DNA of 64,000 bases. It comes from Heterodontus francisci (Eukaryota). Position 1 is the first letter of the stretch, and each line of letters opens with the position of its first letter. A program made the translations under genes and the position numbers. The stretch is from NCBI RefSeq assembly GCF_036365525.1, contig NC_090382.1, positions 101,986,595 through 102,050,594 of the forward strand. Reading direction: 5' to 3'. Of the stretch, positions 5,067 through 54,500 are shown piece by piece. The notes under the pieces were generated by a model. It saw nothing but the letters and a program-made list of their open reading frames with translations. It searched no databases and was not told the DNA's origin.

Positions 5067-5338
5067 AGGAGTTTGCAAGTTCTCCCTGTGTCTGCGTGGG
5101 TTTCCTCCGGGTGCTCCGGTTTCCTCCCACATGCCAAAGACTTGCTGGTTGATAGGTAAATTGGCCATTAGCAATTGCCCCTAGTATAGGTAGGTGGTAG
5201 GAAAATATAGGGACAGGTGGGGTTGTGGTAGGAATATGGAATTAGTGTAGGATTAGTATAAATGGGTGGTTGGTGGTCGGCACAGACTCGGTGGGCCGAA
5301 GGGCCTGTTTCAGTGCTGTATCTCTAAACTAAACTAAT
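5067..5338 (+). mobile_element. 5'-truncated HE1-like SINE (copy A only)
   Basis: Matches 2365-2610; (taaac)n tail; empty site at ~40480 in copy B. Confidence 0.85.
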
Positions 5339-12610: not shown

Positions 12611-13915
12611 TCTTCCCATCTTCCCTCAATTCTCCTAACACCTACCTACATTAGGGGCAATTTTTTACAATGGCCAATTTACCTATCAACCCGCAAGTCT
12701 TTGGCATGTGGGAGGAAACTGGAACACCCAGAGCAAACCCATGTGGTCACAGGGAGAACTTGCAAATGCCGCACAGGCAGTACCCAGAACAAACCCGGAT
12801 CGCTGGAGCTGTGAGGCTGCAGTGCTAACCACTGCACCACTCTGCCGCCCTTCTCTTACACATCTTTCTCTCTCTCTCTGGTCGGCACTCTTTTGTTGCT
12901 GTTTCACTGCAAAAACCCTGCTTCCTTTCCCTTGACTTAACTGAAGGTAATCAACCTCTTCATCTGTCTACTTGTGGCTTCATGTGTTCTGGACTGAGAT
13001 ATTGTAAGCTTGTCCCTTCAATCAGGATGTGCCGAGCCCTAAATGAGCTGAACTACCAGCCTTTCATCTTTGAATTTGCACTTGCTGGCTACATTTCTAA
13101 ATCTTGTTGGGAAATTGTCAACAGGCTCACTTGGTCCCAGTCTCACCGTCTGAAATTCATAACGGTGGATCTGATGTTTGTCTTTTGCTGAAGATATGTG
13201 CTGAATTTCTCACAAATTTCATCTGAGTTTTAATTGTTGATCTCACTCGTTTCCCAGCTATTGAGAAGATCTAATCCTTTCTCTCCTGTATGTCCACAAA
13301 ATGATGTAACTGACCTTTTCGTCTTCACTCATGCCTTTCAGAAAACTACTGAATGTCAATTTGCACTTTTGCTTAAACTTTTTGAATGCCTCCACAATGT
13401 TGTTGGAATTCCAAATCATCATGGGCAGAACTGCACAAGCATTGCTGTGGTGAGCATCTCATTTTTTTTGGGGGGGGGTGGGGGGGGGAATAATTCAGGT
13501 TGTTTTTCACAATCAAATTCAGTAGTACAATTGCTCATATGGATTGAGTTCTACTCACAAATACCTTGCTGCCACCACATTATGTCTTGCGGTTCCCAGA
13601 GCTCCAAAATAATCACACTTCTCAAGTACTGGAGCTTGCATCTCTTATATTTTACACAGCTCTGTATGTGTGGCAGAATGATACAATGTGTTTTGGTACT
13701 ATTAAGCTTACAAGAACTGCAACAATGTAAAAGTACAGTATAAAACTTCAGTTATAATAATGTGACTCTGATTTTTTTTAAAGTGAACAATATGTTCCAA
13801 AATTGCCATGAGAAGTAAAAGACAAGGTCTTTGTATATTCAAACTGTCTGACAGAGATAAAAGAATACATTTTGAGGTGGGAGGAGTCAACTACACCCAT
13901 CCTGAAACATTCCTG

Positions 13916-14459
13916 ATTTTTTTTTAATTCATTCATGGGATGTGGGCATCACTGGCTATGTCAGCATTTATTGCCCATCCATAATTGCCCTTGAGAGGTT
14001 GGTGGTGAGCTACCTTCTTGAACCGCTGCAGTCCATGTGAGGTAGGTACACTCTCAGTGCTGTTAGGAAGGGAGTTCCAGGATTTTGACCCAGCAACAGT
14101 GAAGGAACGGCGATATAATTCCAAGTCAGGATGGTGTGTGACTTGGATGGGAACTTGCAGGTGGTAGTGTTCCCATGCATCTGCTGTTCTTGTCCTTCGA
14201 GGTGGTAGAGGTCGTGGGTTTGGAAGGTGCTGTCTAAGGAGCCTTGGTACGTTGCTGCAGTGCATCTTGTGGATGGTACACACTGCTGCCACTGTGCATC
14301 GGTGGAGGAGGGAGTGAATGTTTGTGCATGTTGTGCAAATCAAGCAGGCTGCTTTGTTCTGGATGGTGTCGAGCTACTTGAGTATTGTTTGAGCTGCATC
14401 CATCCAGGCAAGTGGAGAGTATTCCATCACACTCCTGACTTGTGCCTTGTAGATGGTGG
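13916..14459 (-). mobile_element. 5'-truncated family-B LINE (copy A only)
   Basis: 3' end of RT (AAVCTIHKMH), 3' UTR and poly(A). Confidence 0.85.
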
Positions 14460-14489
14460 AATTGAATGGGTTCTTCTGAAACAAAGAAG

Positions 14490-17110: not shown

Positions 17111-17114
17111 CGCA

Positions 17115-17876
17115 TGCAAGATATAATGTGGAAACATCATAACTGGATTATTCTCACCCTGAATATATCAAGAGACACTTTTGAATTGAATGGTTTCTTC
17201 TGAAACAAAGACAATGTGAAGAAACCACATCTTAGGTCAGTGTTGGTCACCACAGGGAGGGAGATCCACATCTCCCAACAGAGACAAACCATTTTTTGCC
17301 TTAAAGGGAGCTTCCTGAAGAGAAAGAGAGAGGGAGACACCCAGAAAGAAGCATCACCAAGAAGCTTGTTTCCAGCTAAAGGACTGGGAGAAATCCAGCA
17401 AGCCAGAAGGGAAGTGACCTGCTGTAAACTTCTACCTCTTTACTGATGCAACAGTGAATGAGAAGTGATCCACTGTCTTCAACTGAGCTTTTCAACCAAT
17501 AGAGAATCCTACAAACACCTCAGGCCTACAACCAACAAGAAGTTGACTTCCGAGAGAGTTCAACAAGATTACCCTGATCCTGAAAACTACCCCACTTCAA
17601 ACCACCTACTCCTTTTCCTCTCTATCTGGCTCTCCTTGTGTGTGAGCGCGAGTGAATGCAGAGTGGATGTGGTTACGACAGTTTCAGGATAAGGCATATT
17701 GTTCAATAAATAATTAATCTACTGTTTTAAACCTACAAAAACACCTGTTGCTATCTATTTATTTGACAAACAAAACACAAAGGGATTAAACACTAATAAC
17801 AAAAAAACACTTGCTGCTTTCAGGTGGGAGTTGAACAGTGGGAACCACTCACACCCCTCACCATGTGACCGTAACA
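17115..17876 (+). mobile_element. Probable solo LTR; paralog at 52196-52963
   Basis: TG...CA ends (tgtaagg...cgtaaca in copy B), internal AATAAA, non-coding. No clear TSD. Confidence 0.5.
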
Positions 17877-17949
17877 GTACACAGACTGTAGTGCAGTAGT
17901 GGTTGATGCGGTATTGTGGTTATATATGTATACATACACATAAACAATA

Positions 17950-19150
17950 TCGATCCTAAATCATTTTGGGATAATTTAACAATATAACAGAAGGGTATTC
18001 CAGAGCTTGGGGACAAGGCAATGGAAGGCACAGCCACCAATGGTGGAATGATTAAAATCAGGGATGCTTGAGGCCAGAATTAACGGAGTGCAGATATCTT
18101 GGAGGGTTTTGGGGCTGGAGGAGATTACAGAGATAGTGAGGACAAGGCCATGGAGACATTTGAAAATAAGGAAGAGAATTTTAAAATCACAATGTTGCTT
18201 GATTGGGAGCCAATGTAGGTCAGTGAGCACAGGGGTGATAGGGGAATGGGACTTGGTACGAGTTGAGACATGGTGTTACAGAGGGACAAATAGGTGGTCT
18301 CAATGATGGCACAAATATGAGGTCAGAGGCTCATCCTAGGGTCAAATGTGACACCAAGGTTGTCAACAGACTGGTTTAATCACAAACTGTTGCCTGGGAG
18401 AGAGATGGAGTCAGTTGCTAGAGAACAGAGTATGGAGCAGGGACCAAAAACAATGGCTTCAGTGTTCCCAATATTTAATTGGAGGAAATTTCTGCTCATT
18501 CAGTACTGGATGTAGGATAAGCAACAGTGAAGGAGTCGAGAGATGTTAGGTACAGTGGTTAGGTGCAGCATACATATAAAATCTAACACTGTGCTTTCAA
18601 ATAATGTCACCGAGGAGCTGCATGCAGATCAGAATTAGGAGGGAGCCAAGGATAGATCCTTGGGGGACACCAGAGGTAATGACATTGCAGTAGGAAGAGA
18701 AGCCATTGCAAGTAATTCTCTGGCTATGATTAATTAAATAAGAATGGAACCAGTGAGACCAGTCCCACCCAGCTGTCGGAGAGTGGACAGGTCTTGGAGG
18801 AGGATGGTGTGGTCAACCATGTCAAAGGCTGCAGCCAGTCGAGAAGGATGAGGAGGGAAAGTTTACCTTTGTAAGAGTCAGTCACATAGGATGTCATTTG
18901 TGGCTTTGATAAGGGCTGTTTTGGTCCTGAGGCAGGGGCACAAACCTCATTGGAGGAATTCAAAAATGGAGGTCCTGGAAAGATGGCAATGGATTCGGGA
19001 GGCGACAACACAGTCAAAGACTTTGGAGAGGAAAAGGAGGATGGAAATGGGACAGCTTGAAAGGGCATTGGTGTTAAGTGTTAGTTTTGTGAGGAGAGGG
19101 GTGATGATGGCAGATATAAAGGAGAGAGGGACAACACCTGAAGAGAAAGA
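17950..19150 (-). mobile_element. Old L2-type LINE fragment; paralog at 53040-54240
   Basis: LTDLHWLPIKQ..DFKIL and KTALIKATNDIL..LSLLILLD remnants. Confidence 0.7.
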
Positions 19151-20689: not shown

Positions 20690-23600
20690 TAGAACATAGA
20701 ACATAGAACATTACAGCGCAGTACAGGCCCTTCAGCCCTCGATGTTGCGCCGACCTGTGAAACCATCTGACCTACACTATTCCATTTTCATCCATATGTC
20801 TATCCAATGACCACTTAAATGCCCTTAAAGTTGGCGAGTCTACTACTGTTGCAGGCAGGGCGTTCCACGCCCCTACTACTCTCTGTGTAAAGAAACTACC
20901 TCTGACATCTGTCCTATATCTATCACCCCTCAACTTAAAGCTATGTCCCCTCGTGTTTGCCATCACCATCCGAGGAAAAAGGCTCTCACTATCCACCCTG
21001 TCCAGCCCTCTGATTATCTTATCTGTCTCTATTAAGTCACCTCTTCTCCTCCTTCTCTCTAACGAAAACAACCTCAAGTCCCTCAGCCTTTCCTCGTAAG
21101 ACCTTCCCTCCATACCAGGCAACATCCTAGTAAATCTCCTCTGCACCTTTTCCAAAGCTTCCACATCCTTCCTATAATGCGGTGACCAGAACTGCACGCA
21201 ATACTCCAGGTGCGGCCGCACCAGAGTTTTGTACAGCTGCAGCATGACCTCGTGGCTCCTAAACTCGATCCCCCTACTAATAAAAGCTAACACACCATAT
21301 GCCTTCTTAACAGCTCTATTAACCTGGGTAGCAACTTTCAGGGATTTATGTACCTGGACACCAAGATCTCTCTGCTCATCTACACTACCAAGAATCTTCC
21401 CATTAGCCCAGTATTCTGCAATCCTGTTACTCCTTCCGAAGTGAATCACCTCACACTTTTCCGCATTAAACTCCATTTGCCATATCTCAGCCCAGCTCTG
21501 CAGCCTATCTATGTCCCTCTGTAACCTACAACATCCTTCGGCACTATCCACAACTCCACCGACCTTCGTGTCATCCGCAAATTTACTAACCCACCCTTCT
21601 ACACCCTCATCCAGGTCATTTATAAAAATGACAAACAGCAGTGGTCCCAAAACAGATCCTTGCGGTACACCACTAGAAACTATACTCCAGGATGAACATT
21701 TACCATCAACCAGCACCCTCTGTCTTCCTTCAGCTAGCCAATTTCTGATCCAAAGCACTAATTCACCTTCAATCCCATACTTCTGTATTTTCTGCAATAG
21801 CCTACTGTGGGGAACTTTATCAAACGCCTTACTGAAATCCATATAGACCACATCCACGGCTTTACCCTCATCCACCTGTTTGGTCACCTTGTCAAAAAAC
21901 TCAACAAGGTTTGTGAGGCACGACCTACCCTTCACAAAACCGTGCTGACTATCTCTAATGAACTTATTCTTTTCAAGATGATTATAAATCCTATCTCTTA
22001 TAACCTTTTCCAACATTTTACCCACAACCGAAGTAAGGCTCACAGGTCTATAATTACCAGGGCTGTCTCTACTCCCCTTCTTGAACAAGGGGACAACATT
22101 TGCTATCCTCCAGTCTTCCGGCACTATTCCTGTCGACAATGACGACATAAAAATCAAGGACAAAGGCTCTGCAATCTCCTCCCTGGCTTCCCAGAGAATC
22201 CTAGGATAAATCCCATCTGGCCCAGGGGACTTATCTATTTTCACACTTTCCAAAATTGCTAACACCTCCTCCTTGTGAACCTCAATCCCATCTAGCCTAG
22301 TAGTCTGTATCTCAGTATTCTCCTCGACAACATTTTCTTTCTCCACTGTAAATACTGACAAAAAATATTCATTTAACACTTCCCCTATCTCCTCCGATTC
22401 CACACACAACTTCCCACTACTATCCTTGATTGGCCCTAACCTATCTCTAGTCATTCTTTTATTCCTGATATACCTATAGAAAGCCTTAGGGTTTTCTTTG
22501 ATCCTATCCACCAATGACTTCTCGTGTCCTCTCCTTGCACTTCTTATCTCTCCCTTTAGATCCTTCCTGGCTAGCTTGTAACTCTCAAGCACCCTAACTG
22601 AGCCTTCACGTCTCATCCTAACATAAGCCTTCTTCTTCCTCTTGACAAACTCTTCAACTTCTTTAGTAAACTACGGCTCCCTCGCTCGACAACTTCCTCC
22701 CTGCCTGACAGGTACATACTTATCAAGGACACGCAGTAGCTGCTCCTTGAATAAGCTCCACATTTCGATTGTGCCCATCCCCTGCAGTTTCCTTCCCCAT
22801 CCTACGCATCCTAAATCTTGCCTAATCGCATCATAATTTCCTTTCCCCCAGCTATAATTCTTGCCCTGCTGTATATGCCTGTCCCTGCCCATCGCTAAGG
22901 TAAACCTAACCGAATTGTGATCACTATCACCAAAGTGCTCACCAACTTCTAAATCTAACACCTGGCCGGGTTCTTTACCCAGTACCAAATCCAATGTGGC
23001 ATCGCCCCTGGTTGGCCTGTCTACATACTGTGTCAGAAAACCCTCCTGCACACACTGGACAAAAACAGACCCATCTAAAGTACTCGAACTATAGTATTTC
23101 CAGTCAATATTTGGAAAGTTAAAGTCCCCCATAACCACTACCCTGTTACTCTCGCTCCTGTCAAGAATCATCTTTGCTATCCTTTCCTCTACATCTCTGG
23201 AACTATTTGGAGGTCTATAGAAAACTCCCAACAGGGTGACCTCTCCTCTCCTGTTTCTAACCTCGGCCCAGACTACCTCAGTAGACGAGTCCTCAAACGT
23301 CCTTTCTGCCGCTGTAATAGTTTCCTTGATTAACAATGCCACACCCCCCCCCTCTTTTACCATCTTCTCTGTTCTTAGTGAAACATCTAAATCCCGGAAC
23401 CCGCAGCATCCATTCCTGTCCCTGCTCTACCCATGTCTCTGAAATGGCCACAACATCGAGATCCCAGGTACCAACCCATGCTGCAAGCTGACCCACCTTA
23501 TTCCGGATGCTCCTGGCGTTGAAGTAGACACATTTTAAACCAAGCTCTTGCTTGCCAGCGCCCTCTTGTGTCCTTATAACCTTATCTCTGCCCTCACTAC

Positions 23601-34475: not shown

Positions 34476-34944
34476 TTGTCGTGTGTGTTACACTCACAAC
34501 GCACGAGCCTTCAGTTAGAATGAGAGTTATGAGGTACAGATGTTTCTGTTGGGTTGTTGGGTTTGTATTAGTCATGATGTAGAGCATTCTAGAGAAAGTC
34601 TTAGACTCAGGTAAAGGTTTGCTGACAATTCTTTTGTTATTTACAGTTACTATATATATTCACCATAAGCCACATAAAACAACATCTTTGGTGCTGCTAA
34701 ACCTTCTTCTTCTCAAGCTTATCTCCTGTGACTGTTACATCATCACTCGTACAGTGGGAGGGATCTCTCTCACTGTCTTTGGTATTAATCCTTTACATCC
34801 TTACACTACAGTTTCCAGGATCAGCTGAGGCAGACAGAGAGGATTCTCTGAGCCTGAAGAAAGAAGACTTTCAAATCCAATGCTTGCAGCTGGCACTTAT
34901 TTTTGGTGTGTTTATTTTGGGCATTTTGTCTTGGAATTCTGATT

Positions 34945-37900
34945 TTCTTTTTATTTCTTCATGTGATGTGTGCATCGCTGGCTAGACCAGCATTCATTGA
35001 CCATCCCTAATTGCCCTTGAGAAGGTGGTGCTGATCTGCCTTTTTGAACTGCTGCAGTCCTTGTAGTTACACCAACAGTGCTGTTAAGAAGGGAGTTCAG
35101 GATTTTGACCCAGCGATAGTGAAGAATGGAGATATAGTTCCAAGTCAGAATGGTGTGTGACTTGGAGGGGAACTTGCAGGTGGTGGTGCTCCCATGCATT
35201 TGCTGCCCTTGTCCTTCTAGTTGGTCCAGGTCGCGGGTTTGGAAGGTGCTGTCCAAGGAGCCTTAGTGCATTGCTGCAGTGCATCTTGTAGATGGTGCAC
35301 ACTGATGCCAATGTGTGTCGGTGGTGGAGGGAGTGAATGTTTGTATATGGGGTGCCAATCAAGCGGGCTGCTTTGTCCTGGATGGTGTCGAGCTTCTTGA
35401 GTATTGTTGGAGCTGCACCCATCTAGGCAAGTGGAGAGTATTCCATCACACTGTTGACTTGTGCCTTGTAGATGGTGGACAGGCTTTGGGGAGTCAGGAG
35501 GTGAGTTACTCGCCTCAGGATTCCTAGCCTCTGACCTGCTCTTGTAGCCACGGTATTTAAATGGCTACTCCAGTTCAGTTTCGGGTCAATGGTAGCCCCT
35601 AGGATGTTGATAGTGGGGGATTCAGCGATGGTAATGCTGTTGAATGTCAAGGGGAGATGGTTAGATTCTCTCTTGTTGGAGATGGTCATTGCCTGGCACT
35701 TGTGTGGCGTGAATGTTACTTGCCAATTATCAGCCCAAGCCTGGATATTATCCAGGTCTTGCCGCATTTCTACACGGACTGCTTCAGTATCTGAGGAGTC
35801 ACGAATGGTGCTGAACATTGTGCCATCATCAGCGAACATCCCCACTTCTGACTTTATGATTGAAGGTCGGTCATTGATGAAGCAGCTGAAGATAGTTGGG
35901 CCCAGGACACTACCCTGAGGAACTCCTGCAGTGATGTCCTGGAGCTCAGATGATTGACCTCCAACAACCACAACCATCTTCCTTTGCGCTAGGTATGACT
36001 CCGGTCAGCAGAGGGTTTTCCCCCTGATTCCCATTGATCTCAGTTTTGCTAGGGCTCCTTGATGCCATACTCGGTCAAATGCTGCCTTAATGTCAAGGGC
36101 AGTCACTCTCACCTCATCTCTTGAGTTCAGCTTTTTTGTCCATGTTTGAACCAAGGCTGTAATGAGGTCAGGAGCTGAGTGGCCCTGGTGGAACCCAAAC
36201 TGAGCGTCACTGAGCAGGTTATTGCTAAGCACTGCTGGCACTGTTGGTGACACCTTCCATCACTTTACTGATGATTGAGAGTAGGCTGATAGGGCGGTAA
36301 TTGACCGGGTTGGACTTGTCCTGCTTTTTGTGTACAGGGCATACCTGGGCAATTTTCCACATTGCAGGGTAGATGCCAGTGTTGTAGCTGTACTAGAACA
36401 GCTTGGCTAGGGGCGCGGCAAGTTCTGGAGCGCAGGTCTTCAGGACTATTGCCAGAATATTGTCAGGGCCCATAGATTTTGCAGTATCCAGTGCCTTTAG
36501 TCGTTCCTTGATAGCACGCGGGGTGAATAGAATTGGCTGAAGTCTGGCATCTGTGATGCTGGGGACTTCAGGAGGAGGCCGAGATGGATCATCAATTCGG
36601 CACTTCTGGCTGAAGATTGTTGCAAATGCTTCAGCCTAATCTTTTGCACTGATGTGCGGGGCTCCCCCATCATCGAGGATGGGGTTATTTGTGGAGCCAC
36701 CTCCTCCAGTTAGTTGTTTAATTGTGCACCACCATTCACGACTGGATGTGGCAGGACTGCAGAGCTTAGATCTGATCCGTTGGTTATGGGATCGCTTAGC
36801 TCTGTCTATCGCATGCTGCTTACGCAGTTTGTCACGCAGATTGTCCTGTGTTGTAGCTTCACCAGGTTGACACCTCATTTTGAGGTATGCCTGGTGCTGC
36901 TTCTGGCATGCCCTCCTGCACTCTTCATTGAACCAGGGTGGGTCTCCTGGCTTGATGGTAATGGTAGAGTGGGGGATATGCCGGGCCATGAGGTTACAGA
37001 TTGTGGTTGAGTACAATTCTGCTGCTGCTGATGGCCCACTGCGCCTCATGGATGCCCAGTTTTGCATTGATAGATCTGTTCGAAATCTATCCCATTTAGC
37101 ACGGTGATAGTGCCACACAACACGATGGACGGTATCCTCAATCTGAAGGCGGGACTTCTTCTCCACAACGACTGTGCGGTGGTTACTCCTACCAATACAG
37201 TCATGGACAGAAACATCTGCGGCAGGCAGATTGGTGAGGACGAGGTCAGGTATGTTCTTCCCTCGTGTTGGTTCCCTCACCACCTGCTGCAGACCCAGTC
37301 TAGCAGCTATGTCCTTTAGGACTCTGCCAGCTCGGTCAGTAGCGGTGCTACCGAGCCATTCTTTGTGATGGACATTGAAGTCCCCCACCCAGAGTACATT
37401 TTGTGCCCTTGCCACCCTCTATGCTTCCTCCAAGTGGTGTTCAACATGGAGGAGTACTGAGACATCTGCTGAGGGAGGGCGGTAGGTGGTAATCAGTCGG
37501 AGGTTACCTTGCCCATGTTTGACCTGATGCCATGAGACTTCATGGGGTCCGGAGTCGATGTTGAGGACTCCCAGGGCAACTCCCTCCCTTCTGTATACCA
37601 CCGTGCTACCACCTCTGGTGGGTCTGTCCTGCTGGTGGGGCAGGACATACCCGGGGATGGTGATGGCAGCGTCTGGGACATTGTCAGGTATGATTCTGTG
37701 AGTATGACTATGTCAGGCTGTTGCTTGACTAGTCTGTGGAACAGCTCTCCCAACTTTGGCACAAGCCCCCAGATGTTATTAAGGAGGACTTTGCAGGGTC
37801 GACAGGGCTGGGTTTGCCATTGTCGTTTCTGGTGCCTAGGTCGATGCCGGGTGGCCTGTCCGGTTTCATTGTTTTTTATTGACTTAGTAGCGGTTAGGTG

Positions 37901-38203
37901 CAACTGAGTGGCTTGCTAGGCCATTTCAGAGGGCATGTAAGAGTCAACCACATTGCTGTGGGTCTGGAGTCACATGTAGGCCAGACCAGGTAAGGACAGC
38001 AGATTTCCTTCCCTAAAGGACATTAGCGAACCAGATGGGTTTTTACAACAATTGACAATGGTTTCATGGCCATCATTAGACTAGATTTAATTCCAGATTT
38101 ATTAATTAAATTCAAATTCCACCTTCTGCTGTGGTGGGATTCGAACCCATGTCCCCAGAGAAATACCCTGGGTCCAGTGATAATACCACTACGCCACTCC
38201 CTA
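34945..38203 (-). mobile_element. Near-full-length ORF1-less LINE (CR1/L2 super-group, here 'family B') with a tRNA-like Pol III head
   Basis: Box A TGGCGTAGTGG at 38196-38186 and box B GGTTCGAATCC at 38147-38137. APE motifs: NIWGL, ILTES, YRPP, VGDFN, DLVLTN. RT motifs: QFGF, LDIKAAFD, GVPQGSVLGP, FADD. The ORF is broken by several stops and frameshifts; the 3' end is A-rich. Confidence 0.9.
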
Positions 38204-38826
38204 CCCATGTAAAATGGATAGATGCCTGCTCTATGGGCCAGAACCACTTTCACACAATCCATAAAGCAAGGTCACTGCTGTTTGAGTTGAGGGCAACTTG
38301 TAGGTTTTTTCACACTTGACACTGTCTCCTCTTACATTTAATATTTTGCACAGTGTTAATACCGGTGCACTTTCTACACCTTATTTCTTTTTCTCGATTT
38401 CTACTGAAGCTTCTAAATCTCCTCAGCCAGACTAACCCAGAGTCGGTTTAATTGCTGCTGAAATACAACTTCACAGCTGACAAAATTGGAAGGGTGGAAA
38501 TCCTTTCCTTATTGTCCAGGGAGCAATCATGATGCTTTCTGACAGAAACATGGGGTAATTTGTCTTTGTGCGATAATGTAAATTGGCAGCACATTTCACA
38601 GAGATGACTCACTATTGCACATGGTTAAAGTTTCCTGTCCACTGTTCTCCAGAAAGCCTGCTGTTGAAGGATGATGCTGGAGCCCATCTTTACTCAGTCT
38701 TGCATTAATTTTATGAAGTAAAAAGATTATAAATATGCAGCTCCTCACTCAAACCTTCACCCAGTTTCAGTAAGTATCCCCTTACATACACACTCAAGTA
38801 AGACCCTAATTAACACCCTCCACATG

Positions 38827-40065
38827 GAAGAGGTCATAAAACATGGGGTCACTCCCAGGGACTGGGTCCAGTGCAGAAAGAGAGTCAACGACCTCTTTGA
38901 TTCTGTCAAGGTGAGTGCTCTGTACCTCTGTCCACTTTGGGGCTTGCATGTGGCTAAGCGGGAGGCAGTGTGGTGTGAGGAGGGAATGACCACAAAGATG
39001 CTGGCAAAGGGGCCAGGCATCACCACATCCTAGCAAATACATGGCTGCATCTCGGCGACCGGCCACTTTCTTTCACAGCTCACCCCCATTACATCCCCTG
39101 AGAGTGGACGTGGGGAGAAGCCACATGGGAAACCTCATCAGGAGACAAGGGGTTGCCACTAGCATAACTGTTCACTTTCTCTTCCAGCAAAAGCTTACTT
39201 TCTGCCTCTTTCCACTTGCAGGACAAAAACAGCCGTCAAACTTCTGGAGAGGAGCAGCAGACAGAGGATGCACTGTCTCATGACTCCCCTGCACCTTCCA
39301 CCAGTGCAGATAATTTCAGCATGGTGAGTATGAGTTTGGTCTTAGAATCAGGGTCACAAACTGGTGAGAGCACTGCACACTCACCTGAGCAACTGGATGA
39401 GGCTGGGACAGCTGAGGCCACTGACAGTCTGAGGACTCTAGGTGACCAGGCCCGTGCTAAGCCCCAGGCTGATGACAAGCCTCTGGTGTAGCCAGCACAG
39501 GGCATGCTGGACTTGCAGAGAGAGGTAAGGGAACATCTGGCAGAGCTGCCAGAGACAAAGACATCTGCCATGAGCAGATGATGGAGGATTCCATCCATGC
39601 CTTGAGTGCTCCATGTCTCAGGCCTGTGAGTTCACGGCTTTCTCCATCGAGAGGTTGGCAACCCTCATGGAGAGCCAGATTCCACCGATGTGCACAGGCC
39701 TGCACACTATCACCATGGCCATGACCGCAATGCAGCATTGGCAAGGCAAGAGAAGGACAAGGTGCCTGGAGTCTTCTCCAGGTTCTCGTCCTTCTCTGGG
39801 CAGCAGGGAGGTTCAAGTGAGCCTTAAAAGGGTGGAAAATAGGCTGACCTCCACATGTGGGGGCTTCCCTCAGGGTACTCTGAATTTGGACAGCAGCTCC
39901 TCAGCCCCTCAACCAGTGAGCCCTGCTCCAATAGCCATGATGCCTGGTGAGAATCCTATACCTGTGCAGGAAACTCTAATGCAGCTGGAGCCCTCCAGGC
40001 CTCAGGCAGCCAGAGGAGGGCCGTCAAAGTCATCCCAGGCCAAGGGGCAGCCTGATCGGCAACAC
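38827..40065 (+). mobile_element. Harbinger-type Myb/SANT gene remnant; its 3' part is also at 3845-4645
   Basis: EEV..GVTPRDWVQCRKRVNDL (trihelix/MSANTD-like) followed by donor AAG|GTGAGT, acceptor ccacttgcag|GAC and a low-complexity coiled-coil region. Confidence 0.65.
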
Positions 40066-41443
40066 ACTTCTAATGGCCTCACTAAATTCCAACCACTATT
40101 ATACGATAAAACAGAACAATTCTATTCGACATTGAGTTTATTTGTTACTAAAAACAATCAATAATAAGAGAGGACATGGTTAAATCCATGTTGCAGAAAA
40201 GAATGGCTCCAAATTTCATTGTGATTCCTGGTCTACAGGGCACATTATCAGGTTGAACTGGAGTGAACAGGAGAGAAATTGGTGCAGGATGCGGTTATGT
40301 TGTGCCTCCACCCCGTTTGTCTTGAGATGGGGTTTCCTGAGATCAGAGGGGATCAGACGGTTCCAGTGTCCACTCTTCCTGAATCTGAGATGAGAGAGAG
40401 AGAAACCAGCTCTTGGAATCTGACTTCCAATCTCATTCTGGGCTTTGCCTTATCTGTGAAGGTGGTAACTGTGGCTGTGATGGTTACAAATGCACTTAAC
40501 GTTAATGCATTAGAATATTTCCAAGTGGCCTCTGGTGACATTGGTCATATCATTTAGTCAATAATTCATCATTCACTGGACTGTATTTACACTTTGAAAT
40601 CATCATCTTCCTTTACTTGAAGAGTAACACTAAAGTAATAAAGTCCTCATTATAACCATTATTTTATTCATATTTTCACATGGCAAGTTTTCTAAAGCAG
40701 TAAATCCCATTGTCTGTGAACTTTGATAAAGTAGCAACTCACATCACAATTACTAGCAACACAATGGCTCTGTACACATTGTATTCACAATGAAGTTTAA
40801 ACACATTTGGACCAAAACCAAGATGTGATCCAATGTGAGGATCAGGAACAAACCTTCAAACCTTTTCAAATTAACATCTGCCATAACCGTAACTTTTACA
40901 ACAAAAGCACAAGACTGCAGATGCTGGAAATCTGAACTAAAAAGAGAAAATGCTGGAAATGCTCAGCAGATCAAGTAGCATCTGTGGAGAGCGAAACAGT
41001 TCAGGTCGATGACCTTTCATCAGTTTTGACAGACCCGCTGAGCCTTTCCAGCATTCTCTGCAGACATTATAAGGTGCACAGGCTCGAACAACAAAGGATT
41101 CTCAACTATCCCTAATTTTACAAAAACAATTATTCACGTTTGAAATAAAAACAAGAAATGCTGGAAATACTCAGCAGGTCTGGCAGCATCGGTGGAGAGA
41201 GAAGCAGAGTTAACGTTTCAGGTCAGTGACCCTTCATCAGACTCATCATATTGACATTTGACTACTGTTATACATTTGAAACCGTTCTGTACCACATACA
41301 ATCTGTTGACTTTTGAATGATTCAATGTTAAATGCAATGGAATACAAAATGGCTCCACAGAGTGAATGAGACACTTTGAAATATGACATCCAGCTGTGTG
41401 ATGGCAGGTTGTTAGCAAGAGTAGATTCATAGACAGATAGAGG

Positions 41444-41804: not shown

Positions 41805-43294
41805 TTTGCTGCAGATTCAGTCTTTTCCCTGTAAGAAATATACATATAGTTATAGATATATATCATGTATCTTTATATCTAATATTTACCACCAGAAAAT
41901 CACCTGACATAAAACTGAGGCATATTTCTTCAATGTGTTTAACACTACAGACTGTGAAGGAAAAGAAATAAGCTAAAACAACTTGATAAATTATTTCCTT
42001 ATTCAAACATAGAACTGTAAAATGTACAATAAACATCTTTTGTAAAGTGCTCCGCCTCTTCCTGTGATAAATGTATTTAAAATTACTCATCCTAGATTAT
42101 GATGGACCATGTATAATGTACCCCTTATCCACCAGTCACATTGACTTTCCAACTGAAAATGAATGAATTGAATTAGGTAGAAAACGAGGAATTTAATTAC
42201 CTGTTATAGGAAGAGTGGACAAAATGTAAACTTACGAAAGATCTCTTCACTCAAATTTTCACTTACACCTAGGTAAATAAAACTAATCAGAAAACTTAGG
42301 AATTTAAATAACTGAGTATGAATTAACAGCAATCAATATTTTGTCCTCAACTGCTGCTACACATATTGAGAATATTGTTACAATAATATGCTTTCAAAGG
42401 CATTATCAATGCAGAATCACCTATGATCAACATCATGGGGGAGACACTATTGACCAGAAACTCAACTGTACCAGGAATATAAATGTCGTTGCTGGTGAAG
42501 AACCTCAGAGGCCGGGTGCACTGTGGCAAGTGCCTCCCCAATATCTCTCCACCAATGTCAGACGTCTGATGGAATAATATCTTGGTGTAAGGATGGTTGC
42601 ATTTGCAACAACACTCAAGAACAACATCTCTCATCAGTTCTTGTAGGTTTGCTGTATGCTCTGATATGTGAGATGTGAAAGAACACATGTACTGGCCAAG
42701 AACATTTCTCAGCTCCTTCTTGTCGTCGGAAGCTCCATTGCAGAAATAGCTATGACTTTTTCAGGACTCGGCTTGACTCTATCAGGTGTGTAAACCATTC
42801 CAAAGAACTGACATTCTGTCATCTTTACAGTGCATTTATTTGCGATTAGCTTGATCCCAGCTTTCTTAGTTTCCGCCATGGTTTCATGTAGATGGTAGTT
42901 ATGGTCTTTTTTATCGACATCATAGATCTGGATATCATCAGCTATGCTGATTGCTCCTTTGCAGCCCTATATATCTTGTCTATTTTCTGCTGGAACACCT
43001 CCTGGCTCACTTCAAGGCCAAGAAGTAGACACAGGAATTTGTACGTCCAAAGGGTGTGTTGAATGTTGTCAACAGTGAATATTCCTCATCAAGCTTCACG
43101 TTCCACTAGCTATTTCTGGCGTCTACCTTTCTTTTCTTTCACATTTCCCCTGTTGCTCTGCCTCTGGTAATTCCCTTACCATCTTCATTGTTCTGCACAT
43201 CTTTTCTGGTGATTGGGCTTGCCACAAGCTCTGCACTTTGATTTGTATGCAGTACATTTCTTTCTGTCTGTGAGCTCATGTAGTCATCCACTTC

Positions 43295-43679: not shown

Positions 43680-46600
43680 AGAACATTACAGTGTCTCTAT
43701 TAAGTCACCTCTCCTCCTCCTTCTCTCCAACGAAAACAACCTCAAGTCCCTCAGCCTTTCCTCGTAAGACCTTCCCTCCATACCAGGCAACATCCTAGTA
43801 AATCTCCTCTGCACCCTTTCCAAAGCTTCCACATCCTTCCTATAATGCGGTGACCAGAACTGCACGCAATACTCCAGGTGCGGCCTCACCAGAGTTTTGT
43901 ACAGCTGCAGCATGACCTCGTGGCTCCGAAACTCGATCCCCCTATAATAAAAGCTAACACACCATATGCCTTCTTAACAGCCCTATTAACCTGGGTAGCA
44001 ACTTTCAGGGATTTATGTACCTGGACACCAAGATCTCTCTGTTAATCTACACTACCAAGAATCTTCCCATTAGCCCAGTACTCTGCATTCCTGTTACTCC
44101 TTCCGAAGTGAATCACCTCACACTTTTCCGCATTAAACTCCATTTGCCATCTCTCAGCCCAGCCATGCAGCCTATCTATGTCCCTCTGTACCCTACAACA
44201 TCCTTCGGCACTATCCACAACTCCACCGACCTTCGTGTCATCCGCAAATTTACTAACCCACCCTTCTACACCCTCATCCAGGTCATTTATAAAAATGACA
44301 AACAGCAGTGGCCCCAAAACAGATCCTTGCGGTACACCACTAGTAACTAAACTCCAGGATGAACATTTGCCATCAACCACCACCCTCTGTCTTCTTTCAG
44401 CTAGCCAATTTCTGATCCAAAGCTCTAAATCACCTTCAACCCCATACTTCCATATTTTCTGCAATAGCCTACCATGGGGAACCTTATCAAACGCCTTACT
44501 GAAATCCATATACACCACATTCACTGCTTTACCCTCATCCACCTGTTTGGTCACCTTCTCGAAAAACTCAATAAGGTTTGTGAGGCACGACCTACCCTTC
44601 ACAAAACCGTGCTGACTATCTCTAATGAACTTACTCTTCTCAAGATGATTATAAATCCTGTCTCTTATAACCTTTTCCAACATTTTACCCACAACCGAAG
44701 TAAGGCTCACAGGTCTATAATTACCAGGGCTGTCTCTACTCCCCTTCTTGAACAAGGGGACAACATTTGCTATCCTCCAGTCTTCCGGCACTATTCCTGT
44801 CGACAATGACGACATAAAGATCAAGGACAAAGGCTCTGCAATCTCCTCCCTGGCTTCCCAGAGAATCCTAGGATAAATCCCATCTGGCCCAGGGGACTTA
44901 TCTATTTTCACACTTTCCAAAATTGCTAACACCTCCTCCTTGTGAACCTCAATCCCATCTAGCCTAGTAGTCTGAATCTCAGTATTCTTCTCGACAACAT
45001 TTTCTTTCTCTACTGTAAATACTGACGAAAAATATTCATTTAACGCTTCCCCTATCTCCTCTGATTCCACACACAACTTCCCACTACTATCCTTGATTGG
45101 CCCTAATCTAACTCTAGTCATTCTTTTTTTCCTGATATACCTATAGAAAGCCTTAGGGTTTTCCTCGATCCTATCCGCCAATGACTTCTCGTGTCCTCTC
45201 CTTGCTCTTCTTAGCTCCCCCTTTAGATCCTTCCTGGCTAGCTTGTAACTCTCAAGCGCCCTAACTGAGCCTTCACGTCTCATCCTAACATAAGCCTTCT
45301 TCTTCCTTTTGACAAGTGCTTCAACTTCTTTAGTAAACCACGGCTCCCTCGCTCGACAACTTCCTCCCTGCCTGACAGGTACATACTTATCAAGGACACG
45401 CAGTAGCTGCTCCTTGAATAAGCTCCACATTTCGATTGTGCCCATCCCCTGCAGTTTCCTTCCCCATCCTACGCATCCTAAATCTTGCCTAATCGCATCA
45501 TAATTTCCTTTCCCCCAGCTATAATTCTTGCCCTGCAGTATATACCTGTCCCTGCCCATCGCTAAGGTAAACCTAACCGAATTGTGATCACTATCACCAA
45601 AGTGCTCACCTACATCTAAATCTAACACCTGACCGGGTTCATTACCCAGTACCAAATCCAATGTGGCATCGCCCCTGGTTGGCCTGTCTACATATTGTGT
45701 CAGAAAACCTCCTGCACACACTGGACAAAAACTGACCCATCTAAAGTACTCGAACTATAGTATTTCCAGTCAATATTTGGAAAGTTAAAGTCCCCCATAA
45801 CCACTACCCTGTTACTCTCGCTCCTGTCGAGAATCATCTTCGCTATCCTTTCCTCTACATCTCTGGCACTACTCGGAGGTCTATAGAAAACTCCCAACAG
45901 GGTGACCTCTCCTCTCCTGTTTCGAACCTCGGCCCATACTACCTCAGTAGACGAGTCCTCAAACATCCTTTCTGCCGCTGTAATACTCTCCTTGATTAAC
46001 AATGCCACACCCCCCCCTCTTTTACCATCTTCTCTGTTCTTACTGAAACATCTAAATCCCGGAACCTGCAACATCCATTCCTGCCCCTGCTCTACCCATG
46101 TCTCTGAAATGGCCACAACATCGAGATCCCAGGTACCAACCCATGCTGCAAGCTCACCCACCTTATTCCGGATGCTCCTGGCGTTGAAGTAGACACTCTT
46201 TAAACCAAGTTCTTGCTTGCCAGTGCCCTCTTGCGTCCTCGTAACCTTATCCCTGACCTCACTACTCTCAACATCCTGTACACTGGAACTACAATTTAGG
46301 TTCCCATTCCCCTGCTGAATTAGTTTAAACCCCCCCGAAGAGCACTAGCAAATCTCCCCCCCAGGATATTGGTACCCCTCTGGTTCAGGTGAAGACCATC
46401 CTGTTTGTAGAGGTCCCACCTACCCCAGAAAGAGCCCCAATTATCCAGGAAACCAAAACCCTCCCTGCTACACCATCCCTGCAGCCACGTGTTCAACTCC
46501 TCTCTCTCCCTATTCCTCGCTTCGCTAGCACGTGGCACGGGCAACAACCCAGAGATAACAACTCTGTTTGTTCTCGCTCTAAGCTTCCACCCTAGCTCCC

Positions 46601-47590: not shown

Positions 47591-48674
47591 ACTGCACTGC
47601 AAAAAACCCTGCTTCCTTTCCCTTGACTTAACTGAAGGCTTGGTGTTTGGGTCATCAACCTTTTCATCTGTCTATTTGTGGCTTCATGTGTTCTGGCCTG
47701 AGATATTGTAAGCTTGTCCCTTCCGATTAGATCTCTTTGCACATCGGGATGTGCCGAGCCCCAAATGAGCTGAACTACCAGCCTTTCATCTTTGAATTTG
47801 CACTTGCTGACTACATTTCTAAATCTTCTTGGGAAATTGTCAACAGGCTCACTCGATCCCAGTCTCACCGTCTGAAATTCATAACGGTGGATCTGATGTT
47901 TGTCTTTTGCTGAAGATGTGTGCTGAATTTCTCACAAATTTCATCTGAGTTTTTACTGTTGATCTCACTCATTTGCCTGCTATTGAGAAGATCTAATCCT
48001 TTCTCTCCTGTATGTCCACAAAATGATGTAACTGACCTTTTCATCTTCACAATTTCATTTCATTTCAGAAAACGACTGAATGTCAATTTGCACTTTTACT
48101 TAAACTTTTCGAATGCCTCCACAATGTTGTTGGAATTCCAAATCATCATGGGCAGAACTGCACAAGCATTGCTGTGGTGAGCATCTCATTTATTTTGGGG
48201 GGGGAGGGAATAATTCAGGTTGTTTTTCACAATCAAATTCAGTAGTACCATTGCTCATATGGATTGAGTTCTGCTCACAAATACCTTGCTGCCACCACAT
48301 TATGTCTTGCGGTTCCCAGAGCTCCAAAATAATCACACTTCTCAACACATGTACTGGAGCTTGCACCTCTTACACTTTACACAGCTCTGTATGTGTGGCA
48401 GAATGATACAATGTGTTTTGGTACTGTCAAGCTTACAAGAACTGCAACAACGAAAAAATACAGTATCAAACTTGAGGTCTAATAATGTGACTCTACCTTT
48501 TTAAAAAGTGAACAATATGTTCCAAAATGGCCATGAGAAGTTAAAGACAAGGCCTTTGTATATTCAAACTGTCTGACAGAGATAAAGGAATACCTTTTGA
48601 GCTGGGAGGAGTCAATTACACCCATCCTGAAGCATTCCTGAATTGAATGGGTTCTTCGGAAACAAAGAAGTTGT

Positions 48675-49541
48675 GAAGACTCCTCAGATACTGAAGCAGT
48701 CCATGTAGAAATGCAGCAAGACCTGGACAATATCCAGGCTTGGGCTGATAAGTGGCGAGTAACATTCACGCCATTCAAATGCCAGGCAATGACCATCTCC
48801 AACAAGAGAGAATCTAACCATCTCCCCTTGACATTCAATGGCATTACCATCGCTGAATCCCCCACTATCAACATCCTAGGAGCTACCATTGACCAGAAAC
48901 TGAACTGGAGTAGCCATATAAATACCGTGGCTACAAGAGCAGGTCAGAGGCTAGGAATCCTGCGGCAAGTAACTCACCTCCTGACTCCCCAAAGCCTGTC
49001 CACCATCTACAAGGCACAAGTCAGGAATGTGATGGAATACTCTCCACTTGCCTGGATGGGTGCAGCTCCAACAACACTCAAGAAGCTCGACACCATCCAG
49101 GACAAAGCAGCCCGCTTGATTGGCACCCCATCTACAAACATTCACTCCCTTCACCACCAACACACAATGGCAGCAGTGTGTACCATCTACAAGATGCACT
49201 GCAGCAATGCACCAAGGCTCCTCAGACAGCACCTTCCAAACCCACGACCTCTACCAACTGGAAGGACAAGTGCAGCAAATACATGGGAACACCACCACCT
49301 GCAAGTTCCCCTCCAAGACACACACCATCCTGACCTGGAACTATAGCGCCGTTCCTTCACTGTCGCTGGGTCAAAATCCTGAAACTCCCTTCCTAACAGC
49401 ACTGTGGGTATACCTACCTCAAATGGACTGCAGCGGTTCAAGAAGGCAGCTCACCACCACCTTCTCAAGGGCAATTAGGGATGGGCAATAAATGCTGGTG
49501 TGGCCAGTGACGCCCACATCCCATGAAGGAATTTTTAAAAA
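48675..49541 (+). mobile_element. 5'-truncated family-B LINE (copy B only, opposite orientation)
   Basis: ORF 48711-49346 (QQDLDNIQAWAD...) and 3' UTR. Confidence 0.85.
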
Positions 49542-49764
49542 AGAGGACATGAGTAGGCTACAAAGGGATATAGGTAGACTAAGGAGTATAATGTGGGAAA
49601 ATGTGAATTTGTCCATTTTAGCAGGAAGAATAAAAAAGAAGCATATTATCTAAATTGTGAGAGATTGCAGAGTTCTGAAATGCAGAGGGATCTGGGTGCC
49701 CTAGCGCACGAGTCACAAAAGGTTAGCATGTAGGTACAGCAAGTAATTAGGAAAGTTGATAGAA

Positions 49765-51560
49765 TTTTTTTTTAATTCATTCATGGGATGTGGGCATTAT
49801 TGGCTAGGCCAGCATTTATTGCCCATCCCTAATTACCCTTGAGAAGGTGGTGGTGAGCTGCCTTCTTGAACCGCTGCAGTCCATGTGAGGTAGGTACACC
49901 CAGAGTGCTATTAGGAAATGAGTTCCAGGATCTTGACCCAGCGACAGTGAAGGAACGGCGACATAGTTCCAAGTCAGGATGGTGTGTGACTTGGAGGGGA
50001 ACTTGCTGGTGGTGGTGTTCCCATGCATTTGCTGTCCTTGTCCTTCTAGTTGCAAGAGGTGGCGGGTTTGGAAGGTGATGTCAAAGGAGCCTTGGTGCAT
50101 TGCATCTTGTACGTGGTACACAGTGCTTCCACTGTGCGTCGGTGGTGGAGGGAGTGAATGTTTGTAGATGGGTTGCCAATCAAGCGGGCTGCTTGCTCCT
50201 GGATGGTCGAGCTTCTTGAGTGTTGTTGGAGCTGCACCCATCCAGGCAAGTGGAGATTTTTCCATCACACTCCTGACATGGGCCTTGAAGATGGTGGACA
50301 GGCTTTGGGGAGTCAGGAGGTGAGTTATTCGCCGCAGGATTCCAAGCCTCTGACATGCTCTTGTAACCACAGTATTTGTATTGCTACTCTAGTTCAGATT
50401 CTGGTCAATGGTAACCCCCCAGGATGTTGATAGTGGGGGAGCCAGCTATCACAATGCCATTGAATGTCAGGGGAGATGGTTCGATTCTCTCTTGCTGGAA
50501 ATGGTCATTGCCTGGCACCTGTGCAGCATGAATGTTACTTGCCACCTATCAGCCCAAGCTTCGATATTGTCTCGGTCTTGTTAACTTTCTACACAGACTC
50601 CTTCAGTATCTGAGGAGTCGCAAATGGTGCTGAACATTGTATAATCATCAGCAAACATCCCTACTTCTGACCTTATGTTTAAGACAGGTCATTGATGAAG
50701 CAGCTGAAGATGATTGGGCCTAGGACACTACTCTGAGAAACTCCTGAAGTGATGTTCTGGAGCTGTGAACAACCGCAACCAACCACCAACAACCACCACT
50801 ATCTTCCTTTGAGCTAGTAATGACTCCAATCAGTGGAGAGTTTTCTTCCCGATTCCCATTGACTTCAGTTTTGCTACGGCTTGATGCCATACTCGGTCAA
50901 ATACTGCATTGTTGTCAAGGGCAGTCACTCTCACTCTCACCTCACCTCTTGAGTTCGGCTCTTTTGTCCATGTTTGAACCAAGGCTGGAATGAGGTCAGT
51001 GCTGAGTGGCCCTGGCGGAACCCAAATTGAGCGTCAGCATTACTGTTAAGCAAGTGCCGCTTGACCTGTTGCTTGACTAATCTGTGGGATAGCTGTCACA
51101 ACTTTGGCACAAGCCCCCAGATGTTAGTAAGGAGGACTTCACAGGGTGACAGGGCTGGGTTTGCCCTTGTCGTTTCCGGTGCCTTGGTCGATGCTGTGAG
51201 GTTCGTCTGGTTTCATTTTGTTTTATTGACTTTGTAGCAGTTAGGTACATCTGAGTGGCTTGCTAGGCATTTTCAGAGGGCATTTAAGAGTCAACCACAT
51301 TGCTGTGGGTCTGGAGTCACATGTAGGCCAGACCAGCAGATTTCCTTCCCTGAAGAACATTAGTGAACCAGATGGGTTTTTACAACAATCAACAATGGAT
51401 TCATGGCCATCATTAGACTATTTTTTAATTCCAGATTTATTAATTGAATTCAAATTCCACCTTCTGCTGTGGTGAGATAAGAACCCATGTCCCCAGAGAA
51501 ATACCCTGTGTCTCTGGGTTTCTAGTCCAGTAGCAATACCACTACGCCCCTGTTTCCCCT
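49765..51560 (-). mobile_element. Family-B LINE, paralog of 14716-16483
   Basis: Same insertion site and same internal deletion in copy B. Confidence 0.9.
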
Positions 51561-54500
51561 GATTATTGTAAGGGGAAATGAATATAAAAGTAGGAAGGTT
51601 ATGCTTCAAGTATACAGGGCATTGGTGAGACCACATCTGGAGTACTGTAAACAGTATTGGTCTCTTTATTTAAGCAAGGATGTAAATGTATTGGAAGCAG
51701 TTGAGAGAAGGTTTACTGGACTCATACCTGGAATGGGGGATTGTCTTATAAGGAAAGGTTGGACAGACTAGGCTTGTATCCACTGGAGTTTAGAAGAGTA
51801 AGAGGCAACTTGATTGAAACATGTAAGATCCTGAGAGGCCTTGACAGGATGGATGTGGAAAGGATGTTTCCTCTTGTGAGAGAATCTAGAACTAGGGGTC
51901 ACAGTTGAAAATGAACCATTTAAGACAGAGATGAGGAGAATTTATTTCTCTCAGAGGGTCATGAGTCTTTGGAGCTCTCTTCCCCAAAAGGCCGTGGAAG
52001 CAAAGTTTTGAATATTTTTAAAGCAGAGGTAGATAGATTCTTGATAATCGAGAGGGTGAAACGTTATTGGGAGTAAGCAGGAATGTGGAGTTGAGGTTAC
52101 AATCAGATCAGCCATGATCTTATTGAATGGCGGAGCAGGCTTAAGGGGCCGAGTGACCTACTCCTGCTCCCAATTTGTCTGTTCATATGCTCGTATGTAA
52201 GGTATAATGTGGAAACATCATAACTGGATTATTCTCATCCTGAATTTATCAAGAGACACTTTTGAATTGAATGGTTTCTTCTGAAACAAAGACAATGTGA
52301 AGAAACCACATCTTAGGTCAGTGTTGGTCACCACAGGGAGGGAGATCCACATCTCCCAGCAGAGACAAACCATTTGTGGTCTTAAAGGTAGCATCCTGAA
52401 GAGAAAGAGAGAGAGAGAGACACCCAGAAAGAAGCATCACCAATAAGCTTGTTTCCAGCTAAGGGACTGGGAGAAATCCAGCAAGTCAGAAGGGAAGTGA
52501 CCTGCTGTAAAATTCTATCTCTTTACTGATGCAACAGTGAATGAGAAGTGATCCACTATCTTCAACTGAGCTTTTCAACCAATAGAGAAACCTACAAACA
52601 CCTCAGGCCTGCAACCAATGAGATTTTGACTTCTGAGAGAATTCAACAGGATTACTATGATATCGAAAACTATCCCACTTGAAACCACTTACCCCTTTTC
52701 CTCCCTATCATTCTCTCCTTGTGTGTGTGTGTGCGCGAGTGAATGCATGAGTGGATGTGGTTGTGACAATTTCAGGATAAGGCATATTTTTCAATAAATA
52801 ATTAATCTTCTGTTTTAAACCTACAAAAACACCTGTTGCTGCCTATTTATTTGACAAAGAAAACACAAAGGGATTAAACACTAATAACAAAAAAACACTT
52901 GCTGCTTTCAGGTGGGAGTTGAACAGTGGGAACCACTCACACCCCTCACCATGTGACCGTAACAGTACACAGACTGTAGTGCAGTAGTGGTTGATGTGGT
53001 ATTGTGGTTATATATGTATACATACACATAAACAATATCGATCCTAAATCATTTTGGGATAATTTAACAATGTAACAGAAGGGTATTCCAGAGCTTGGGG
53101 ACAAGGCAATGGAAGGCACAGCCACCAATGGTGGAATGATTAAAATCAGGGATGCTTGAGGCCAGAATTAGCGGAGTGCAGATATCTTGGAGGGTTTTGG
53201 GGCTGGAGGAGATTACAGAGATAGTGAGGACAGGGCCATGGAGGCATTTGAAAATAAGGAAGAGAATTTTAAAATCACAATGTTGGTTGATTAGGAGCCA
53301 ATGTAGGTCAGTGAGCACAGGGGTGATAGGGGAATGGGACTTGGTACGAGTTGAGACATGGTGTTACAGAGGGACAAATAGGTGGTCTCAATGATGGCAC
53401 AAATATGAGGTCAGAGGCTCATCCTAGGGTCAAATGTGACACCAAGGTTGTCAAAAGACTGGTTTAATCACAAATAGTTGCCTGGGAGAGAGATGGAGTC
53501 AGTTGCTAGAGAACAGAGTATGGAGCAGGGACCAAAAACAATGGCTTCAGTGTTCCCAATATTTAATTGGAGGAAATTTCTGCTCATTCAGTACTGGATG
53601 TCAGATAAGCAACAGTGAAGGAGTCGAGAGATGTTAGGTACAGTGGTTAGGTACAGCATACATATAAAATCTGACAATGTGCTTTCAAATAATGTCACCG
53701 AGCAGCTGCATGCAGATCAGAATTAGGAGGGAGCCAAGGATAGATCCTTGGGGGACACCAGAGGTAATGACATTGGAGTAGGAAGAGAAGCCATTGCAAG
53801 TAATTCTCTGGCTATGATTAATTAGATAAGAATGGAACCAGTGAGACCAGTCCCACCCAGCTGTCGGAGAGTGGACAGGTCTTGGAGGAGGATGGTGTGG
53901 TCAACCATGTCAAAGGCTGCAGCCAGTCGAGAAGGATGAGGAGGGAAAGTTTACCTTTGTAAGAGTCACATAGGATGTCATTTGTGGCTTTGATAAGGGC
54001 TGTTTTGGTCCTGAGGCAGGGGCACAAACCTCATTTGAGGAATTCAAAGATGGAGGTCCTGGAAAGATGGCAATGGATTCGGGAGGCGACAACACAGTCA
54101 AAGACTTTGGAGAGGAAAAGGAGGTTGGAAATGGGACAGCTTGAAAGGGCATTGGTGTTAAGTGTTAGTTTTGTGAGGAGAGGGGTGATGATGGCAGATT
54201 TAAAGGAGAGAGGGACAACACCTGAAGAGAAAGAAACATTTATAGTATCGATGATTTTTAAATGTGAAATTACAAATCACACATATCATACCAACTCTGG
54301 AACACAAAATACATTTTTTTTTCAGATCTTTAAAGTTTTGCACAAAATCATCATGAATTTCTTTAACTGGTCCTGACTTTGGTCACATGACTAACCGATT
54401 GCAGTAAATGGTTATCTTTGTGTCACAGTTTTAGATGAACCACATCTACATCCTTCCACCATCCGCCCAATGCCAAAATGTGGTTCACCTCAAACTGTGA

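Follow-up and report, generated by a model that had tools for sequence, protein, structure and literature searches.

The window analysed here is a 64,000-nt stretch of Heterodontus francisci, and the element under study is a full-length, decayed long interspersed element (LINE) of 3,259 nt on its minus strand (34945-38203), which opens with a transfer RNA (tRNA)-like head and shares this head and the body behind it with an abundant short interspersed element (SINE). We call it copy A and number its element positions 1-3,259 along the minus strand. Besides the window itself, contigs of four public runs (one from the source organism, two from other organisms and a metatranscriptome) were aligned to the element at a likeness of at least 85%, which gave 5,000-540,000 aligned contigs per run; all of them are assembled (Logan) contigs, and depth is therefore counted per contig and used loosely. 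The parts of copy A, with the domains of its apurinic/apyrimidinic endonuclease (APE) and reverse transcriptase (RT), and the four further pieces of the family that self-BLAST of the window revealed are as follows.

34945-38203, minus strand: copy A, full-length, decayed headed LINE, 3,259 nt (sequence, self-BLAST and frame map; family contigs stop at both ends)
38128-38203, minus strand: tRNA-like head, element positions 1-76 (box motifs)
37902-38127, minus strand: body common to the LINE and the SINE, element positions 77-302 (contig joints, loose contig ends at 37901/37902)
37916-37924, minus strand: ATG-GCC-TAG mini open reading frame (mini-ORF) in the APE frame, within the shared body (sequence of copies A, B and C)
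37793-37901, minus strand: LINE-specific leader, element positions 303-411 (copy comparison, frame map)
37170-37792, minus strand: APE endonuclease domain (Pfam PF14529, tblastn against relatives of 960-980 amino acids)
35588-36232, minus strand: RT core, the part matched by RVT_1 (Pfam PF00078, two pieces)
35084-35086, minus strand: stop codon closing the APE-RT frame, element positions 3118-3120 (frame map)
34945-35083, minus strand: 3' untranslated region and tail (alignment of five 3' ends, contig joints)
34945-35020, minus strand: tail segment common to the LINE and the SINE, the last ~76 nt (contig joints)
14730-16476, minus strand: copy B, in which the 5' part through position 486 (head, body, leader, ~75 nt of the APE) is fused to the C-terminal part of the RT and the tail (self-BLAST)
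49766-51552, minus strand: copy C, paralogous to B through a ~6-kb segmental duplication (self-BLAST)
13918-14460, minus strand: copy D, 5'-truncated 3' fragment (self-BLAST, 3' end alignment)
48678-49532, plus strand: copy E, 5'-truncated 3' fragment (self-BLAST, 3' end alignment)

Pfam analysis of the translated pieces of copy A places an APE domain (Exo_endo_phos_2, PF14529) ahead of an RT (RVT_1, PF00078) within a single reading frame, and the translation is collinear in tblastn with the single-ORF relatives. The coding part runs in frame 1 to position ~506, in frame 3 to ~1974 and in frame 1 again to the closing stop, and it is broken by five in-frame stops and two frameshifts; an intact ORF with a start codon is absent, and copy A is dead. 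At least two of these defects are private to it: the stop at 35424, where copy A has TAG and nearly all public contigs have TGG, and a 4-nt deletion at ~37681 (position 522), across which the relatives read TESYLTDNVPD. The APE N-terminal motif KVLLNNIWGL begins at ~37792. From the stop at element positions 286-288 to the start of the APE there are 41 codons only, so that ORF1 is absent, as the first-pass annotation of this DNA had claimed when it described a body running straight into an APE-RT frame. The lack of ORF1 is not unusual among L2-type LINEs such as UnaL2 and ZfL2-2. With APE and RT in one frame and a 3' end common to full-length and 5'-truncated copies, the family is one of APE-type non-LTR (long terminal repeat) retrotransposons, and copy A belongs to a group of LINEs with one APE-RT frame that is old and very abundant in sharks. 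The family is probably L2-like, a label taken from the published class of its partner SINE. In protein searches the nearest full-length proteins were ~34-40% identical and the closer matches were family fragments only. No target-site duplication was seen by eye around copies A or B.

The tRNA-type box A (38196-38186) and box B (38147-38137) that had been proposed for the start of the element were both found exact in copy A: box A (TGGCGTAGTGG) lies at 38186-38196 and box B (GGTTCGAATCC) at 38137-38147 on the minus strand, the latter being the sole exact match in the 64 kb. As a test for a type-2 RNA polymerase III (Pol III) promoter, box A TRGCNNAGTGG and box B GGTTCGANNCC were sought 30-60 nt apart at the 5' end; the two boxes were found with a gap of 38 nt in copy A and, with one mismatch per box, with a gap of 53 nt in copy B, the difference being a 15-nt deletion between the boxes in copy A relative to B and C. 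ARAGORN called no tRNA gene in the head and nothing reached the Rfam gathering thresholds; for the copy A head there was no tRNA match at the relaxed Rfam threshold either, and the copy B head, 15 nt longer, gave a weak match to the tRNA-Sec model (15.6 bits, E 2.4) that lies below any threshold. The head is thus tRNA-derived by motif only, as is usual for SINE heads. The weak tRNA-Sec match of the copy B head (16396-16476, minus strand) is due to the long variable arm; the number of tRNA-Sec loci in sharks is reported to be unusually high (preprint 10.1101/2025.06.08.657570).

Comparison of the copies revealed that this arrangement is a property of the family. From the head through the leader and ~75 nt into the APE, B and C are 89-90% identical to copy A; both then show an internal deletion, which has removed element positions ~487 to ~1950-1970. 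Both are carried by one ~6-kb segmental duplication (12905-18916 and 47595-54000, ~91% identity) and count therefore as one event; D and E, inverted with respect to each other and 90% identical, occupy paralogous sites of the same duplication and probably likewise go back to a single insertion. The first-pass annotation had spoken of five copies, and all five are present; as independent witnesses they reduce to three insertions. Its pairing of B (there 14716-16483) with a paralogue C (there 49765-51560) having the same fusion of head and body was right, with slightly different ends. Both independent insertions that reach the 5' end, A and B/C, share an identical head-body-leader-APE junction, which bears out the earlier view of the SINE-type head as a family trait.

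The public data extend this observation beyond the window. Family contigs stop at the head and the next bin upstream is nearly empty, which bears on the earlier suggestion to check that full-length copies begin there; an element extending further upstream was considered and rejected, as nothing upstream of the head is repeated. In whale shark (Rhincodon typus), the gene models P0155 and P0159 start at the ATG of position 280 in the shared body and continue into the APE, and so does P0156, which starts with MSFREGNLPSSPG, corresponding to body positions 181-219. Family fragments in Heptranchias perlo are 76-81% identical. The architecture of a LINE with a tRNA-like head is real and old. An exact scan with a 20-mer from the APE start found nothing in viral contigs; its three hits among metagenome contigs were chance matches to unrelated sequences, and the one inspected, L001, looks prokaryotic. 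Short diverged matches to the C-terminal part of the RT of the headed family occur in the window at 7174-7361 and 42390-42553 (plus strand; 72% DNA identity at 7177-7296) and are probably older relatives.

The relation of the LINE to the SINE was read from the contig joints. In all four runs, 37897-37912 is joined to 35018-35042, and beyond 37901/37902 the loose contig ends have tail sequence. The abundant SINE of sharks consists accordingly of element positions 1-302 and the last ~76 nt of the LINE, with position 302 joined to 3184. In other words, the SINE is the LINE minus element positions ~303-3183, and B/C is a 1.7-kb intermediate, so that SINE, B/C and LINE form a deletion series. A template switch of the LINE onto SINE RNA would import the SINE tail, and deletion from the LINE appears therefore to be the simpler route to the SINE. 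The junction of body and leader is bridged in one 312-nt contig (record 16 of run X16, 37757-37978), this run being a sample of the source organism under a different study code. The five 3' ends align, the family consensus ends in ...CCCATGAATGAATTAAAAAAAAA, and the 3' untranslated region and tail have a stem-loop with a z-score of -2.3. The shared body would be Deu-like by the literature class of the SINE, whose layout, size and host range agree with those of SacSINE1.

The second feature of the family is the scarcity of T-runs on its sense strand. No run of four or more T was found on the sense strand of copies A, B, C, D or E, in agreement with the first-pass reading by eye; the sole run, a TTTTT starting at 49532, stands at the 3' end of copy E, just past its match at 48678-49532. 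The longest stretch without T4 on either strand of the 64 kb is 34680-38214, which is copy A, and the next two longest, on the same strand, are copies B and C; the median number of such runs per 3,259-nt window is 17-19. For copy A, 4.8 runs are expected from mononucleotide shuffles (P of observing zero 0.01), 2.0 from dinucleotide shuffles (P = 0.11), 2.4 from synonymous-codon shuffles (P = 0.05), 2.1 from codon permutation (P = 0.09) and about one from the counts of TTT and TT. The earlier estimate of 5-6 expected runs is close to the mononucleotide figure and does not survive dinucleotide or codon control, under which 2.0-2.4 are expected. The codon-preserving shuffle that had been recommended, here run on copy A, leaves the absence of TTTT by itself marginal and singles out TTT instead, of which there are 6 against 15 expected in both codon-aware shuffles (P = 0.0002-0.0006). 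TT, TTT and TTTT occur at 0.70, 0.26 and 0 of expectation, and the runs of four or more A, which had been described as common on this strand, number 15 and match composition. The protein points in the same direction: phenylalanine makes up 1.9% of the copy A translation and 2.3-6.2% (mean 4.1%) of 21 full-length relatives, all of which lie above it.

The nearby CR1-like LINEs served as controls. In 3,966 coding nt, 15 T-runs were observed and 16.6 expected, i.e., there is no avoidance, and their frequency of 2.6-5.1 runs per kb agrees with the earlier remark that the neighbouring CR1s are rich in sense-strand TTTT. Taken together, the depletion of TTT beyond codon usage, the halved phenylalanine content and the fact that the three longest T4-free stretches are headed elements make T-run avoidance credible; the purge of terminators claimed in the first-pass annotation is real and, in a single window, statistically moderate, with weaker support than was stated there. 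The control LINEs (8733-10672, 21201-23156, 44111-45703 and 60599-61138, all on the minus strand) are decayed members of another family, 22-41% identical to the RT and APE of copy A, and have a G-rich, C-poor sense strand with a normal T-run frequency. A ~1.9-kb unit whose ORFs resemble each other (MSQACEFTA...) occurs twice on the plus strand, at 3629-5462 and 38709-40661, and is likewise without T-runs of four or more on that strand; the unit may belong to duplicated immunoglobulin-receptor cassettes rather than to a LINE.

These observations led us to favour, tentatively and with doubt slightly uppermost, the reading of the family as a SINE-headed LINE in which the head is an internal Pol III promoter and the sense strand is devoid of terminators. 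The tRNA-like head would be the element's own promoter and would recruit TFIIIC and Pol III, as it must on the SINE. A sense strand kept without terminators of four or more T would allow Pol III to traverse the full 3.2 kb, and the resulting RNA would be the template for retrotransposition. The protein would come from inefficient cap-independent translation of this Pol III RNA or from a minor fraction of transcripts that Pol II would initiate at the head and body. Judged from the sequence, Pol III transcription of the headed LINE is thus plausible, if not quite an even matter. The fuller picture is possible and rather doubtful: an autonomous LINE with a Pol III-made full-length RNA, free of T-runs down to its amino-acid composition, which would be the parent, by internal deletion, of the tRNA-Deu-L2 SINEs, the Deu body being the 5' region of the LINE.

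Several observations weigh against the Pol III reading. Pol III RNA is uncapped, and a transcript of ~3.2 kb would be about ten times as long as the usual Pol III product. There is no in-frame AUG in the ~120 nt between ATG-GCC-TAG and the APE of copy A; the leader lacks an AUG in the APE frame and has an out-of-frame ATG at about element position 341. The leader of B and C has the same length as that of A, without a frame-restoring indel. Copy B also reads ATGGCCTAG at the mini-ORF, and copy C retains the TAG and has lost the ATG (AATGCCTAG). In the whale-shark models the frame is opened by differing private changes (TAG to CAG or GAG in P0155 and P0159, and indels), and the TAG looks therefore ancestral; an ATG-GCC-TAG in the APE frame may point to readthrough or reinitiation. 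At the 3' end the element has no built-in terminator, as it ends in ...GAATTAAAAAAAAA, and the first T-run beyond it is reached only after 265 nt in the case of copy A and after ~45-60 nt in the case of B and C. Contigs are sparse over the first ~70 nt of the leader, a region with an A-run and rich in CpG (16 at 37872 versus 57 at 37779 in run X16). Lastly, the absence of TTTT is marginal once dinucleotides or codons are preserved, and TTT itself is no terminator. Gunnery and Mathews reportedly observed in 1995 that Pol III transcripts are translated, inefficiently. Pol III transcripts have been doubted as efficient templates for translation, and type-3 promoters with dual Pol II/Pol III activity offer one possible way out of this problem (PMC6023835).

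The most serious competitor keeps the architecture and assigns the productive, capped LINE RNA to Pol II, the head and body acting as an internal Pol II promoter or as a platform for both polymerases, with the scarcity of T-runs as a by-product of an A/C-rich, T-poor coding strand. We regard it as possible, with a good deal of doubt. LINEs are normally Pol II units, as stated for LINEs and bipartite LINE derivatives (Kojima 2018, PMC5786205), efficient translation of a protein-coding RNA needs a cap, and codon usage and a low T content of 20.7% (13% at the first codon position) do explain most of the T-run deficit. Against it stand the depletion of TTT beyond codon usage and a phenylalanine content half that of the relatives; nor is any other force known that would keep both boxes perfect at the very start of a LINE. 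The ATTAAA/AATAAA-like hexamer and A-run at the 3' end, which would suit Pol II, belong to a tail that the SINE has as well, and the hexamer cannot therefore discriminate between the two polymerases. The dual-polymerase platform, for its part, has its published parallel in gene-external type-3 promoters and not in tRNA-type ones.

It could also be that the headed 3.2-kb copies are themselves non-autonomous "long SINEs", Pol III-transcribed chimeras that are copied in trans by a headless, Pol II-driven relative with a different 5' end and start codon. The missing in-frame AUG of copy A, the want of a frame-restoring indel in B and C, the differing private changes (CAG, GAG, indels) by which the whale-shark frames are opened and the few contigs over leader positions 303-370 would all fit, and the SINE partner itself spreads by trans-mobilisation. 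A headless full-length copy was not seen in the window, however, and the stops and 4-nt frameshift of copy A are private where this is checkable (nearly all contigs have TGG at 35424, and the frame of the relatives continues across position 522). Avoidance of T-runs and phenylalanine over 2.8 kb of coding sequence moreover implies long selection on a coding element that was itself T-run-constrained, and we consider this explanation unlikely. A SINE that landed by chance upstream of a 5'-truncated LINE, or an assembly artefact, is scarcely credible: SINEs and LINE fragments are both very abundant in the genome, but the body-leader region lacks the tail that a SINE would have brought, the junction is bridged by the X16 contig and by the whale-shark gene models, and its identity in the independent copies A and B/C refutes a chance landing.

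In the standard view, LINEs are Pol II units (R2 uses Pol I) and SINEs are Pol III units, with only a 3' tail in common. A coding LINE that carries the full Pol III head and body of its SINE, together with a strand-specific purge of T-runs, would blur this division. If the Pol III reading is true, the conserved SINE body would have a concrete origin and the birth of a SINE would be a simple internal deletion, and the question would arise of how an uncapped 3-kb RNA without an AUG is translated. A search of the literature by names and sequence strings found no prior description of a coding LINE carrying a tRNA head.

Among known systems, UnaL2 and ZfL2-2 are alike in having one APE-RT ORF and no ORF1; their RT recognises a 3' stem-loop tail and SINEs such as UnaSINE1 are mobilised in trans. 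We know of no tRNA-type 5' module reported for them. Retrotransposons that use or carry a promoter other than one for Pol II are represented by R2, which lacks its own promoter and relies on co-transcription by Pol I, and by the Cassandra terminal-repeat retrotransposons in miniature (TRIMs), non-coding LTR elements that contain a Pol III promoter of the 5S kind; an APE LINE with a promoter of tRNA type is not among them. The dual Pol II/Pol III type-3 promoters (PMC6023835) resemble the proposed arrangement in letting two polymerases work from a single promoter and start site, by which the difficulty with translation would be overcome, and differ from it in being the gene-external U6, H1 and 7SK promoters of human cells instead of tRNA-type heads.

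The closest counterparts of the SINE are SacSINE1 and LmeSINE1, tRNA-Deu SINEs with an L2 tail from sharks, chimaera and coelacanth, for which only the tail was reported to be common with L2-2_CM; SacSINE1 is 463 bp long and occurs in Squalus, Rhincodon, Leucoraja and Callorhinchus (PMC5499810; PMC2746220). The SINE described here is of similar length and likewise consists of a tRNA-type head containing both boxes, followed by a conserved body and a tail of L2 type. Compared by description only, the published pair of SacSINE1 and L2-2_CM shares the 3' tail alone, whereas the LINE in this window also has the head and body of its SINE. Kojima (2018, PMC5786205) found that SINE bodies can derive from the 5' parts of LINEs, the tRNA head being added later to a deleted LINE. 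As in those bipartite LINEs, the middle of the SINE corresponds to the 5' region of the partner LINE, and deletion derivatives that retain both ends have their equivalents in copies B and C. In that model, however, the head is added afterwards and the LINEs stay Pol II units, while here the full-length coding LINE is already headed.

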